Assembly: GCA_964035545.1 (NCBI GenBank)
Contig: OZ037765.1
Location: forward strand, 20,150,995 to 20,214,994
Length of the DNA stretch: 64,000 bases
Direction of reading: 5' to 3'
Source: Bugula neritina
Taxonomy: Eukaryota; Animalia; Bryozoa
Shown one piece after another: positions 48,201-54,200 of this stretch (within the stretch, counting starts at the first letter, position 1; each line of letters starts with the position of its first letter). The notes under the pieces are model-generated. The model was not told the origin of the DNA, did not search any database, and saw nothing but the letters and a program-made list of their open reading frames with translations. The translations under genes were made by a program, and so were the position numbers.

Positions 48201-51200
48201 AGTAGTCTTCCGGGCGTGGCTATGACTATGTGAGCACCCTTAGACAGGTCATTCATCTGGTGCATGGTAGATGTGCCACCGTACAACCGCACACACCTCA
48301 CAATAGTGCCGTGAGAGAACTTTCTACACTCGTTGTAGATTTGTATGACAAGTTCTCTGGTTGGAGCCACAACCAAAGCTTGCGGCTCCTGGACGGGAGA
48401 ATACGCACCAGACTCTAAACCTCTCTGTATCATTCCAGTCAGCACAGGAAGTAGGAAAGCTGCCTACAATAGACCATGTAAAACTCAGCCAATCAGCGAA
48501 GTGTACCAGGTCAATGTCTTACCATTGTAACTGATATAAAATTCTGCAAGTTCAATTGCAAAATGCATGCTTCTAAAAGCTAGTTGTGCAACTTTTTTTT
48601 CATGCATTATTTAATTTCATATCTTAAATTGATGACTCTTGAAATTATTTTTCAAAATGTCTAAATTAAGTGTTTATAAAACGCAATTAAAAATTGCATG
48701 TCTAGAAAAATGACCTGGTACACTTTTGCAACTTAAGGCCAATTATTACATAACTGCCAGCTTAGTAGTTATTTGTTGTTGCAGCTTGAATGGGTTATTG
48801 TTTAGCATTGGAAGCTTGCAGTAAACATCTGTGAATTTGGTACATGACTTCGATTGGCTGGTTTTTGAATGGCCCTTTAGTATATGCATCTGGATGGCTG
48901 GGTAGCGTAGACTCCGCCTACATCTAGCTAATGTACAGTAGCCAATCCACAGTAGTATTACAAAATTTCTGTTTAACAAATGAAATATTCTGGTCATTTG
49001 TTTTGTACTTTACAATAGTAAATATTCTATTCAACTAGAATTTTATTGTATGTAAGCCATGGGAACTACTAAGAGGTTAAATCAACCACCCATGCTGGTA
49101 ATATTGTTACTGGCAGTAATAGCAAGTCCACACCGTATAAATATACACATAAGCTATTATGTGCAGCTTATGAATGCTGAAATGACCCCATTTCTTACTT
49201 TCAATTTGAAAAAAATTGTATTACATATTCTGCCACTTCTGCACCAAGAATTTGTTTTCCTTTTAAATTTTGAAAATAGTAGTCAGTTTCTGCAGCAGTC
49301 AACTGCATCCACAATAAACAACGTAAGTTTTCAAATAAACTATAAATATATGAAATATTAGTGTGGAAACAATGTAATTTAGTTCTTGCTATGATGAAAA
49401 ATTACAAGAATATTATATAAAAGCTAGATATAGATTTCTATAAAATGGCACAGGTAAAAATAACACATTTTTACTTCAAATTCTAAATTTCATCAGTCAC
49501 CAATGGTGGCTGTAGATTACAGAGAGCACAGCAGACTATCATAATCATATTCACAAGGATAGTCAGCCCACTGAGCAAAATCCAACTCCAACCTTTCATT
49601 TGGGTTACCAACGCACTAAAGCATATAATGTAAGACGCACAAAAAACAGTGGTTTTAATGAAACATGTGAAGGAATCGAACAGAAAACGTTATCAACAGA
49701 GTCAGCTGATATAGAGCAACAGAACTCATCTGACAGCCATCCTCATAGTCAGACTTCATCAGAAGTAACTGAGTTACCAGAATCATCAACTACTCAGAAA
49801 AAAAGATCTGCACATTCTATTGATAGATGAAAATCAAAAGTTGGAAGAAAAGGCTCAAAAAGTTCCACGTTTAAACAAAAAGCAACTATTGAAAAACTAA
49901 AAGTTTTTAAAACTTTCACCACTACAGATGAGCAAACTAAATTCTATACTGGAATACCTACACGTTCTCTATACTATTTTTTAGCAAGGTGAAAATTATA
50001 ATTTTTTTATTGCAAAGATAGACTATGGTTTATTGCAAATAAACAATGCAAGTCTCACTATGCTAAAATTTGTACATTGATTATATTTGATGTGTAGTAA
50101 AACTGTCATTTTAATTAAATTTGTTGCAGTGTGAGTACATCATTCATACATTTTTTATTAAAGATGTTGTTTTATGTAAGATATTCATAAATACCACAGT
50201 GGTCATCTGTATGCTTTGACTTATTTAGTTTAGGGTTTTATTTAAACAAGCAGCAGTCTTTTATTTGTGGACAAATTGACTCACTTTCTCCAGGAAAAGT
50301 AAATTGTTTTGACTTAAATTTTCCTTGGTTATCTTAAAGCTTATCAAAAGTGGCCTCCTAATCTAATTTTTAGCTGAAACTAACTCAGTGTTTAAAACTA
50401 AAATGGTTTACACTTGTTACTAGTTTCACTTATTCACAAACATTATTAAATGCTTTTCTAGAAATAATATGGGTTTGAATTAGTTATAGTATAATTATAA
50501 AATGAAGTAATAATTGTTTGTCAACACTATTTGTTTAAACTCATAACTTCATTCAAAGCATGTATTCATACAACTAGCTTACCATGTACTGTTGCAGTAT
50601 TATGTAACACATGTTGACACACATTACATTCTGTTTGGATGGTGATATATTGGGTCAAGCCTTCAGCTAGCAGTTCTTGAACTTCATAGTTGTTGCAAAA
50701 TATAACTGAAGCTACTTACCAGAGGGTAAAAACAGCTGAATGAATACAAACTAAGCACAAAATTTATTTAGCACATACATTATAATTTGAATCATAATTT
50801 AATGTTCATTCTTTATTTTCTATATTTAGATTTATATGTCTGAAGATGAAAGTTCTCACCCTCAGAAAAAAGTTAACAAGACAAGATAAACTTTTATTGG
50901 CTTTGATGAAGCTGCATCAAGGTTTACAGTTTCAAATACTTGCTGGCCTTTTTTATATCTCTAGATGGCTAGCAAGCAAAACTTTCAAAAACACATTAAA
51001 TATTTTAGCAAGAGAACTGAACAATCTAATAGTTTTTCCAATAAGAGAGAAGCTGAACATCCCTCTGAGCTTTCAAAGCCAATATGCTACCATATATTTA
51101 TAGTTTATTTGAAAGCTTACGTTGTGGATGTTAACTGCTATAGAAACTGACTACTATTTTCAAAATTTAAAAGGAAAACAAGTTCCTGGTGCAGAAGTGG

Positions 51201-54200
51201 CAGAATATGTAATACAATTTTTTTCAAATTGAAAGTAAGAAATGGGGTCATTTCAGCATTCATAAGCTGCACATAATAGCTTATGTGTATATTTATACGG
51301 TGTGGACTTGCTATTACTGCCAGTAACAATATTACCAGCATGGGTGGTTGATTTAACCTCTTAGTAGTTCCCATGGCTTACATACAATAAAATTCTAGTT
51401 GAATAGAATATTTACTATTGTAAAGTACAAAACAAATGACCAGAATATTTCATTTGTTAAACAGAAATTTTGTAATACTACTGTGGATTGGCTACTGTAC
51501 ATTAGCTAGATGTAGGCGGAGTCTACGCTACCCAGCCATCCAGATGCATATACTAAAGGGCCATTCAAAAACCAGCCAATCGAAGTCATGTACCAAATTC
51601 ACAGATGTTTACTGCAAGCTTCCAATGCTAAACAATAACCCATTCAAGCTGCAACAACAAATAACTACTAAGCTGGCAGTTATGTAATAATTGGCCTTAA
51701 GTTGCAAAAGTGTACCAGGTCATTTTTCTAGACATGCAATTTTTAATTGCGTTTTATAAACACTTAATTTAGACATTTTGAAAAATAATTTCAAGAGTCA
51801 TCAATTTAAGATATGAAATTAAATAATGCATGAAAAAAAAGTTGCACAACTAGCTTTTAGAAGCATGCATTTTGCAATTGAACTTGCAGAATTTTATATC
51901 AGTTACAATGGTAAGACATTGACCTGGTACACTTCGCTGATTGGCTGAGTTTTACATGGTCTATTCATAGTATAATCATGAAGGATCAAGGACCCTACAC
52001 TAACAACTTCTAATCTGTAACAGCAACGCAGAGCAACAGCTTACCGTTTTACCAGACCCGGTCTGAGCACAACCCATCAAATCTCGTCCAGCAATGATGG
52101 AGGGAATGGCATACTTCTGAACAGGAGTCGGCTTGAAGTACTTCGCCTTCAAGACATTGCGTGAAACAGTCTCGAGCAACCCGGCCTCCTCAAACGTTTG
52201 AATAGGGTTTGGGGGATTTTCCCCGGACAGTTCAACAGGTATTTTGTCATATTTATCAAAGTTTATGCCCACATGACATGATTTGAACAGACTTTCCTCA
52301 TCGTCTGCATCGGGAGGCACATAATTCTCTGTCATGGGTTTTCCTGTAATTTTCATAAAATAGACAAAAAATTACAAGTAAAAACAGTCTTCAGGGTAAA
52401 TGCTGCTACTGCATAAACTATAGCACAAAAATTCCAACTAAAGTTAAGAAAAGCTATGACAAATTATCTAACAGCTAATATAAGGAATAGAGTTTCAAAT
52501 AGCAAATAATAAATTATTGCTATCAAACAATCGCATAAGAGGAATTGAAAATGGTACTTCAAGTATTTGATTTTACATTTGATTTGTTACTTAGTTGGAG
52601 TTCACTCATGTTTTTTACATAATGCTTTTATAAGTCACATCCAATTTTCTGATACACACATTGTTTAGTAAATTGAAAAGTTATTACATATAAAGATATG
52701 CATAAGTGTTCGATAGTTGACCTTAAATTTGTGTAAAATATCAACCATTACTAAATATTAATTAAAAAATAAATTGACAATTATTATGATGTGCAAATGC
52801 GCTAATTTCTACGATGGAAAGGCTCTACTTTCAGTCAGCTACAGTCTAGAAATTAAATTCTCAACAGGTCAACCGCTTGAAGATTAACCAGTTAAGTGAC
52901 GACATTAAAACACTACCTGCTGGAGGACCTCCTCCTGAAGATTCCCTGTCAGATTTTGTGTCCGAAAAGTTGCCAATGCTAAAACCACCGCCAGCCGATC
53001 CTCCTCCAAATCCACTGCCAGCCGAACCTCCTCCAAAACCACCGCCAGCAGTAGATTCTCCACCAAATCCACCGCCAGCAGATCCTTGGCCGAATCCACT
53101 GTTGCTGGATGAAGTTTGACCAAATCCACCTCCGAATCCACCACTGCCGAATCCACCTTCACAACAATTTTTTCCCTTATTACATCAAAGAACATGATTT
53201 GTTGACTTTATGGCTTAGAAATGTGCCAGATGCTAAATCAGTACCTATTGTGAGGTTATAATCTGCAGCCTAATAATGTAAAGGCTACTGCTTTGTTAAT
53301 TGAATCATGCAGAAATAAATGTGAATCATGCAGAAATAAACGTAAATCACACAAAAGTGACACAGAATATTACATACCACTGCTATCACCATTTTGGGGG
53401 CACTCCCTGGACATGTGCCCTTCTTGACCACATTTGAAACAGTTACGGCTACCCCCACCTCGGCCACCACCGCCTCTGCCACCCCTGCTACTCCCACCTT
53501 GAGGGCATTCTCGCGACATATGGCCTTCTTCACCACATTTGAAACAACCACGACCACCCCCACCCTGAGGGCATTCTCGCGACATATGGCCCTCTTCACC
53601 ACATTTGAAACAACCACGACCACCCCCACCCTGAGGGCATTCTCGCGACATATGGCCCTCTTCACCACATTTGAAACAACCACGACCACCTCCTCTACCA
53701 CCTCCTCTGCTACCACCACGACCAGTATCACTGCCTAGAAAACAATTAACAATGTTTGAAGACTTCTGTACTATCACAGCATAATTCAAATATTAGCTGA
53801 AGCAAGTGATCAGAAATTTACTACTGCATATATTACTTGAACCAAAGCCGCTGCTGCCACCAAAGCCGCCACCGAAGCTGCTGCTGCCACCGAAGCCGCT
53901 GTTGCCACCAGAGGCATCTCCAGATCCAAACCCATTTGATGATCCAAAACCATCTCCGGATCCGAAGCCATTTGATGAGCCAAAACCATTTGATGAGCCG
54001 AATCCACCATTAGCAGAGCCACCACCAAACCCTCTATTGGATTGATATTAAAAAATCTCTTAAGTTGGAAAAACACACATTTCAAATAACATTCAACAAA
54101 TAGTTCTAGGCAGGTTTTTATTCAAATCACAGACATTATGCTAACTAAAAGAATTCTGCAAGTCATTGTTTTACAAAAGATATAAGTTGAAAGAAATAGG

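Follow-up and report, generated by a model that had tools for sequence, protein, structure and literature searches.

A young ISL2EU-type transposon copy beside a splice acceptor of a vasa-like gene in Bugula neritina

How did a 3.5-kb self-complementary element come to lie 5 nt from a splice acceptor of a germline gene, and what might it do there? The question is raised by a 64,000-nucleotide window of the Bugula neritina genome (GenBank assembly GCA_964035545.1, contig OZ037765.1, positions 20,150,995 to 20,214,994 of the forward strand), in which an intron of a vasa-like gene holds a transposon with long inverted arms. In this study, we have found that the insertion is real and that it follows the target rule of a family with about 100 copies in the same genome. 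We regard it as probable that this is an ordinary and very recent cut-and-paste insertion of a non-autonomous element of ISL2EU type, from the PIF/Harbinger-ISL2EU-Spy (PHIS) superfamily, into the AATT of a short vasa intron. A first-pass annotation of the window had gone further, proposing that the arms can fold the vasa pre-mRNA into a hairpin that returns the native branch region to its AG and could serve as a germline source of small RNAs against the element's own family.

The vasa-like gene lies on the minus strand, and the interrupted intron (48464..52044, phase 0) runs from a GT at 52044-52043, read as GTAAGC, to an AG at 48465-48464. It separates an exon at 52045..52343, which has its own acceptor AG at 52345-52344, contains the start of the Pfam DEAD match and ends in motif I (GCT CAG ACC GGG TCT GGT AAA ACG, AQTGSGKT) at 52045, from a 285-nt exon at 48179..48463, which opens GCA GCT TTC CTA CTT CCT (AAFLLP) at 48463 and is preceded by ...TATTGTAG. 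The length of 3581 nt previously given for this intron was confirmed.

The element proper occupies positions 48471 to 51962 (3492 bp) and begins AGACCATG. The ends A-AT-AGACC...GGTCT-AT-T were present in 21/21 full copies examined; the sequence common to these copies starts AATAGACC and finishes GGTCTATT, and unrelated sequence lies beyond. Empty sites were sought among the fetched loci, where five copies inside repeats had uninterrupted paralogues (L032 against L048, L033 against L003, L041 against L012, L067 against L023, and L048/L060 against L003/L004), and all five read flank-AATT-flank. The target is therefore A/AT/T, with a 2-bp AT duplication. In the vasa intron, the copy of the duplication nearest the 5' splice site is at 51963..51964, next to a host A at 51965, and the copy nearest the acceptor is at 48469..48470, next to a host T at 48468. 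A TA duplication, as in Tc1/mariner-like elements, was rejected because the empty sites read AATT, and a Spy-like insertion into AAT/ATT without duplication was rejected because they do not read AATATT.

Removal of the element and one AT leaves an intron of 87 nt that ends ...CTATGAATTGTAG, and the five nucleotides TGTAG stand between the 3' AT copy and the exon. The duplication and the empty sites thus uphold what had been claimed of this intron, namely a native length of 87 nt and an insertion point 5 nt from the exon edge. The further claim that the native branch region has been parted from its AG also appears to be correct: the putative native branch points, found by consensus matching at 51978..51989 (TTGAT, with its A at 51986, and TTCAT, with its A at 51979), would now lie 3.5 kb from the true AG. 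At another pair of filled sites, L039 (C3:15189079) and L044 (C2:33125020), both flanks are common to the two loci at 91-95% identity; there, the element seems to have been carried by a segmental duplication rather than inserted twice.

To which family does the element belong? A query with the arm returned 455 candidate genomic places, of which 40 were scored and proved to be 97-100% identical to it. A 29-mer from the terminus, with 2 mismatches or fewer allowed, gave 210 matches in the genome compared with 0 for its reversed control, an excess far above chance, and since there are 210 termini, about 100 copies of the element are present. The 3.49-kb form was the commonest in our sample (17/21 full copies, the vasa copy included), its 17 representatives measuring 3459-3498 bp between the conserved AATA...TATT ends. 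Four longer copies (L049, L050, L068, and L069) are ~4.1-4.2 kb in length, with inverted ends of ~1079 bp and unique sequence that is longer by ~470 bp; in all, ~670 bp of these long forms are absent from the vasa copy. Two of the long copies, L068 and L069, have an open exon of 258-269 aa that encodes HTH_Tnp_4 and a complete DDE_Tnp_4 domain (2e-43 and 3e-44); upstream of it lie an intron of ~850 nt and a further exon.

What the vasa copy retains of this gene is on the plus strand, antisense to vasa. The remnant of transposase exon 1 (49600..49830) is ended by a CGA-to-TGA stop relative to L068, and the remnant of exon 2 (50846..51103) holds an 85-aa open reading frame (ORF) that matches HTH_Tnp_4 alone (PF13613, 1.9e-11), the DDE domain having been deleted from about 51093. 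Judged by these domains, the vasa copy is a deletion derivative without a catalytic domain; since the DDE part of the transposase has been lost, it must have been mobilised in trans.

Comparison with the two closest groups of elements places this family. The ISL2EU group of the PHIS superfamily is defined by the A/AT/T target and AT duplication (PMC4482050), whereas its sister group, Spy, inserts in AAA/TTT without duplication (PMC4122938). The Bugula family shares with ISL2EU (PMC4482050, PMC4122938) the A/AT/T target and 2-bp AT duplication, demonstrated here by empty sites, as well as an IS5/Harbinger-type DDE_Tnp_4 transposase preceded by HTH_Tnp_4 and an invertebrate host. It departs from ISL2EU elements in two respects, since these have a THAP zinc finger at the transposase N terminus and, in most autonomous members, a second gene for a YqaJ-type exonuclease. 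No THAP zinc finger was found: the 130-aa ORF in the upstream exon of L068 has neither a Pfam match nor a Cys/His pattern, although an unrecognised further exon is possible. Nor was a YqaJ-type second gene found: the ~2 kb enclosed by the arms in full-length copies holds only the transposase exons and their intron, and no other ORF of at least 50 aa with coding character was listed there. The full-length Bugula form also measures only ~4.1-4.2 kb, and the last part of its transposase coding sequence falls within the ~1.08-kb inverted ends. The derivative in vasa is, in addition, internally deleted and non-autonomous. With Spy (PMC4122938), the family has in common a single transposase gene with a helix-turn-helix domain and no zinc finger, long inverted ends (as in some Spy families) and an AT-rich palindromic target, and the terminus AGACCATG agrees with the Spy consensus GGANNNNG at 3/4 fixed positions. 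Membership of Spy is excluded, however, because an AT duplication is made here, as shown by empty sites that read AATT and not AATATT. Because the A/AT/T target with AT duplication is the defining signature of ISL2EU (PMC4482050), the family is assigned, by target, duplication and transposase domains, to the PHIS superfamily as a compact ISL2EU relative; it is atypical in being single-gene, since its exons gave no THAP match and the region between the arms is too small for a YqaJ gene. The vasa element thus adds a member to an already known transposon group, and insertions of this kind are likewise known.

Three further features of these elements were observed. The last ~20 transposase codons of the full-length copies fall inside the innermost ~195 bp of the 1079-bp ends (L049:3190-3258, L068:5818-5880; window 49483-49546), and the end of the gene is thereby present a second time, inverted, in the opposite arm. 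A sister family, with 76-80% protein identity in the HTH region, has open frames of 276 aa at at least six loci (for example, C1:14664844, C1:21308786, C7:6560556, and C8:2188758). At L008 (C1, near 33440535), the sequence AC-AATAGAC-TTTA-GTCTAT-CC adjoins the end of a full copy; it resembles a footprint left when another member of this family was excised, with the duplication and 4 nt of each terminus kept.

The arms themselves are as long and as regular as had been described. Repeat searching paired 48468-49303 with 51130-51965 (836 nt, 99%) and, past a small bulge, 49318-49352 with 51091-51125 (35 nt). Alignment of arm to arm showed that the outer 779 bp are perfectly complementary and that the six mismatches and one small bulge all fall within the inner ~100 bp, which bears out the earlier description of near-perfect inverted arms of ~880 bp. 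In the vasa pre-mRNA, the arm at 51091..51962 is transcribed first and the arm at 48471..49352 last, the final 30 nt of the latter now forming the upstream context of the acceptor. The segment at 49353..49546 is the unpaired remainder of the 1079-bp repeat of the full-length copies, its partner having been lost by the internal deletion. Within each arm, the motif AGCCAATC occurs three times, once inverted (window 48487, 48852, and 48940, mirrored in the opposite arm), and the terminal 35 nt of the element recur inverted ~330 nt further inward; both repeats are candidate transposase-binding sites.

The insertion is also very young. The vasa copy differs from L031, a copy at C5:15328904 with unrelated flanks, by 4 substitutions in 3498 aligned bases (0.11%; positions 49134, 49866, 50811, and 50967), compared with 1.4-2.3% divergence from 15 other short copies. 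All six arm mismatches also occur in L031 and therefore were inherited rather than acquired in place. Since only 0.11% separates it from its sibling, the insertion is among the youngest events of its family, and the family itself looks recently active, with near-identical copies and some open transposase exons. Because the event is so young, selection for a role is unlikely, and the insertion is likely to be polymorphic still.

How secure is the identity of the host gene? Its exons were searched singly with Pfam, and the assignment is based on these exon matches rather than on a joined coding sequence, a full-length protein search or a tree. The matches comprised DEAD (3.7e-18, from the AAFLLP exon), Helicase_C (8e-24) and four zf-CCHC knuckles (1e-34), the last in an RGG-rich exon at 53373-53789 of the minus strand that is flanked by FGG-rich exons. 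An LDEAD motif was read directly in the core exon, and the C terminus, near 45.29 kb, is acidic with a Trp (...AAEEESWD and stop). Among solved structures, one 121-aa exon matched Drosophila Vasa best (2DB3, 9e-37) and also Bombyx Vasa, with DDX3X close at 1.5e-33. CCHC knuckles and glycine-rich repeats are absent from PL10/DDX3, and knuckles together with an acidic Trp-containing tail mark Vasa over PL10. On the strength of its knuckles and tail, we therefore identify the gene as Vasa/DDX4-type.

A vasa paralogue was looked for across the 216-Mb assembly, and the motif-I exon had no close second copy there, the next best match being 62% identity over 45 aa. No empty allele or haplotig was found in the same assembly, since the 735-bp insertion flank matches the window locus alone. 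Because the exon and the flank each occur once, vasa is single-copy in the assembly and there is no empty haplotig with which to compare it. Public assemblies gave no exact match to the exon ORF (the set may omit this genome's own records), and a literature search on Bugula vasa found nothing relevant. Every vasa exon examined is open, and the remaining introns are short. The gene looks intact, with its four CCHC knuckles, DEAD and Helicase_C domains and EEESWD end, and this was counted in favour of an ordinary insertion.

Whether the enlarged intron can be removed depends on what the element does to the splice signals, and here a predicted fold was used. The intron plus 50 nt of each exon was folded with ViennaRNA; pairing probabilities were taken from a construct whose stem was shortened to the outer 200 nt of each arm. 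The minimum free energy (MFE) structure (-1947 kcal/mol) contains 877 arm-to-arm pairs, so the proposal that the vasa pre-mRNA can fold into a stem of ~880 bp is sound in thermodynamic terms. Because the target is palindromic, the predicted stem extends past the element, to 51970:48464: AAUA pairs with UAUU, and past a G-G mismatch, CUAU (51970-51967) pairs with bases through the acceptor AG, which lies opposite C51970/U51969 at the base of the stem. In the shortened-stem model the acceptor AG is paired with P about 0.94. Against the idea that the stem would return the native branch region to the AG stands the prediction that this AG is itself paired.

Two other signals enter the calculation. 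The arm does offer, as had been pointed out, a candidate branch point ~30 nt from the AG, a CTGAT at 48492..48496 whose A (48493) is 29 nt from the G of the AG; this A and the accompanying U-rich tract are predicted to be fully paired in the fold (P about 1). At the other junction, the element's first two bases in the direction of vasa transcription (51961..51962) form a decoy acceptor, aauAG/ACC AUG UAA, which lies 18 nt past the native candidate A51979 and 25 nt past A51986. Its use would define a mini-intron of 84 nt (52044..51961), followed by an immediate in-frame stop. Once the stem has formed, the decoy AG is predicted to be paired (P 1.00) and to lie buried 7 bp inside a continuous helix, whereas the true AG is at a frayable end past the G-G mismatch. 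The decoy and the native branch candidates are, however, transcribed ~3.5 kb ahead of the second arm, and the decoy AG is mostly unpaired in predicted folds of nascent transcripts that end before that arm. Three splicing outcomes are therefore conceivable: use of the element's CTGAT with the true AG while the stem is open; use of the native branch with the true AG, bridged by the stem and with the decoy masked; and use of the decoy, which would truncate the vasa reading frame.

Based on these data, we propose the following course of events. Full-length relatives of ~4.1-4.2 kb with an open HTH and DDE_Tnp_4 exon would have moved the DDE-less copy in trans into the vasa intron. The ~880-bp inverted ends are the normal architecture of the family, and a long hairpin in any read-through transcript, here the vasa pre-mRNA, would be a by-product, probably without any part played by selection. 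The AG and the exon have been left untouched, the 30 nt upstream of the AG being replaced by an element end that supplies the candidate CTGAT and a U-rich tract. We infer that the enlarged intron is still removed at least in part, either by way of the element's CTGAT, while the stem has yet to form, or by way of the native branch, once the stem bridges the gap, and that the decoy acceptor at the 5' junction would compete with correct removal.

Several points weigh against this explanation. The splicing outcome is read from DNA and a modelled fold, and the equilibrium fold would hide both the AG and the element-borne branch site, so normal splicing is not guaranteed. Selection would normally clear an insert 5 nt from the acceptor of a single-copy germline gene, and the presence of this one in the reference haplotype could mean that it is tolerated for a reason.

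The first alternative is that the assembly has captured a damaged vasa allele, recent, heterozygous and mildly or recessively deleterious, in which either the decoy is used, leaving the 84-nt mini-intron, a retained element and a stop, or the true AG is occluded by the stem. The decoy UAG is well placed after the native branch candidates, with ACC AUG UAA in frame behind it; the other vasa introns are short, which is consistent with splicing by intron definition; the insertion is very young; and only one haplotype is represented in the assembly. On the other hand, the acceptor still has an AG that can be used and has gained a plausible branch site, and vasa is single-copy with all examined exons open, although this says little for so young an event. 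The fact that such alleles can be carried by colonial animals was also entered among the points against. We consider a damaged allele unlikely, although it deserves to be taken seriously.

The second alternative is the one put forward by the first-pass annotation, in which the hairpin loops out the element, the native branch region meets the AG, vasa stays spliced, and the germline hairpin is diced or edited and triggers silencing of an active family. The ~880-bp stem is indeed the MFE structure, with the outer 779 bp perfect, and folding would favour the true AG over the decoy, since the latter is buried in the helix and the former lies at the frayable end. Structure-bridged introns are known, namely the (AC)m-(GT)n introns of zebrafish (PMC4691745) and the yeast cases of structure-assisted splice-site pairing that the zebrafish paper cites. 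As in those introns, complementary segments could shorten the distance from branch to AG and mask competing AGs. Their stems, however, recur and span tens of base pairs, and a requirement for them has been demonstrated, whereas the vasa intron has a single stem of ~880 bp with a 1.7-kb loop, which arose by one recent insertion and is predicted to pair the AG itself (P about 0.94). The late synthesis of the second arm, ~3.5 kb after a decoy that is mostly unpaired in the nascent fold, also argues against rescue by the stem, and an insertion that has diverged by just 0.11% is too recent to have been moulded by selection.

For the silencing half of the same proposal, the mechanism is already known. 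In Caenorhabditis elegans, Tc1 transcripts that arise by read-through fold on their inverted repeats and feed RNA interference (RNAi), as summarised in PMC3878927, which cites Sijen and Plasterk 2003, and the maize Mu killer locus yields a hairpin of ~4 kb through read-through from a flanking gene (PMC3440606). By analogy, a host promoter would here read through the inverted repeats of a transposon to give snap-back double-stranded RNA (dsRNA) and RNAi against the family. Like other hairpin-RNA triggers (Tc1, Mu killer, and hairpin RNA loci), the locus has a near-perfect long inverted repeat in one transcription unit, with both arms in one vasa intron; unlike Tc1 and Mu killer, it places the hairpin within an intron, and the gene that hosts it encodes a germline RNA helicase. 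The family looks active, with near-identical copies and some open transposase exons, and Dicer, Argonaute/Piwi and ADAR-like loci were found in the genome, so the small-RNA and editing machinery is plausibly present. Several Piwi-domain gene copies form a tandem cluster within ~43 kb (C2:12874319-12917145). However, the same dsRNA could come from about 100 other copies at any site of read-through, so that the copy in vasa is not a unique trigger. Small RNAs and silencing were demonstrated for Tc1 and Mu killer, whereas here the argument is drawn from DNA and a predicted fold. Overall, we judge this reading quite improbable. Its fullest version, in which the vasa pre-mRNA of carriers would form the 779-bp perfect hairpin in germ cells, mask the decoy, bridge the native branch to the true AG and, once excised, give rise to small RNAs that silence the active ISL2EU family, is very doubtful.

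An assembly artefact, in which a repeat copy was misplaced into the vasa intron or the inverted structure came from a fold-back read, is extremely improbable. Assemblies do classically go wrong at long inverted repeats and at elements present in many copies, and a second haplotype for comparison is lacking, but the junctions follow the exact family rule of a split AATT with AT duplication, the arm-loop-arm structure recurs at ~100 loci, and there are four private differences from the nearest relative.

If the ordinary insertion that we favour is tolerated, it provides a clean natural test of how little distance from an acceptor a self-complementary insert of 3.5 kb can leave before splicing is lost, and of whether small RNAs or edited transcripts arise when a germline-expressed gene carries a long hairpin in an intron. 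If the hairpin reading were true, a gene of the germline silencing pathway would host an accidental transposon "killer" locus, an animal counterpart of maize Mu killer. The family could interest transposon biologists as a compact one-gene ISL2EU relative with no THAP domain found, ends of ~1 kb and seemingly recent activity; otherwise, this is a routine case of a young transposon copy in an intron.

Two neighbouring features were also recorded. A long (TA)n/(TATA) microsatellite adjoins the last vasa exon (window 45204-45659), and a Ras-like small GTPase gene, one exon of which reads ...LVGNKCD..., lies just downstream of vasa on the minus strand (window 41854-44058).

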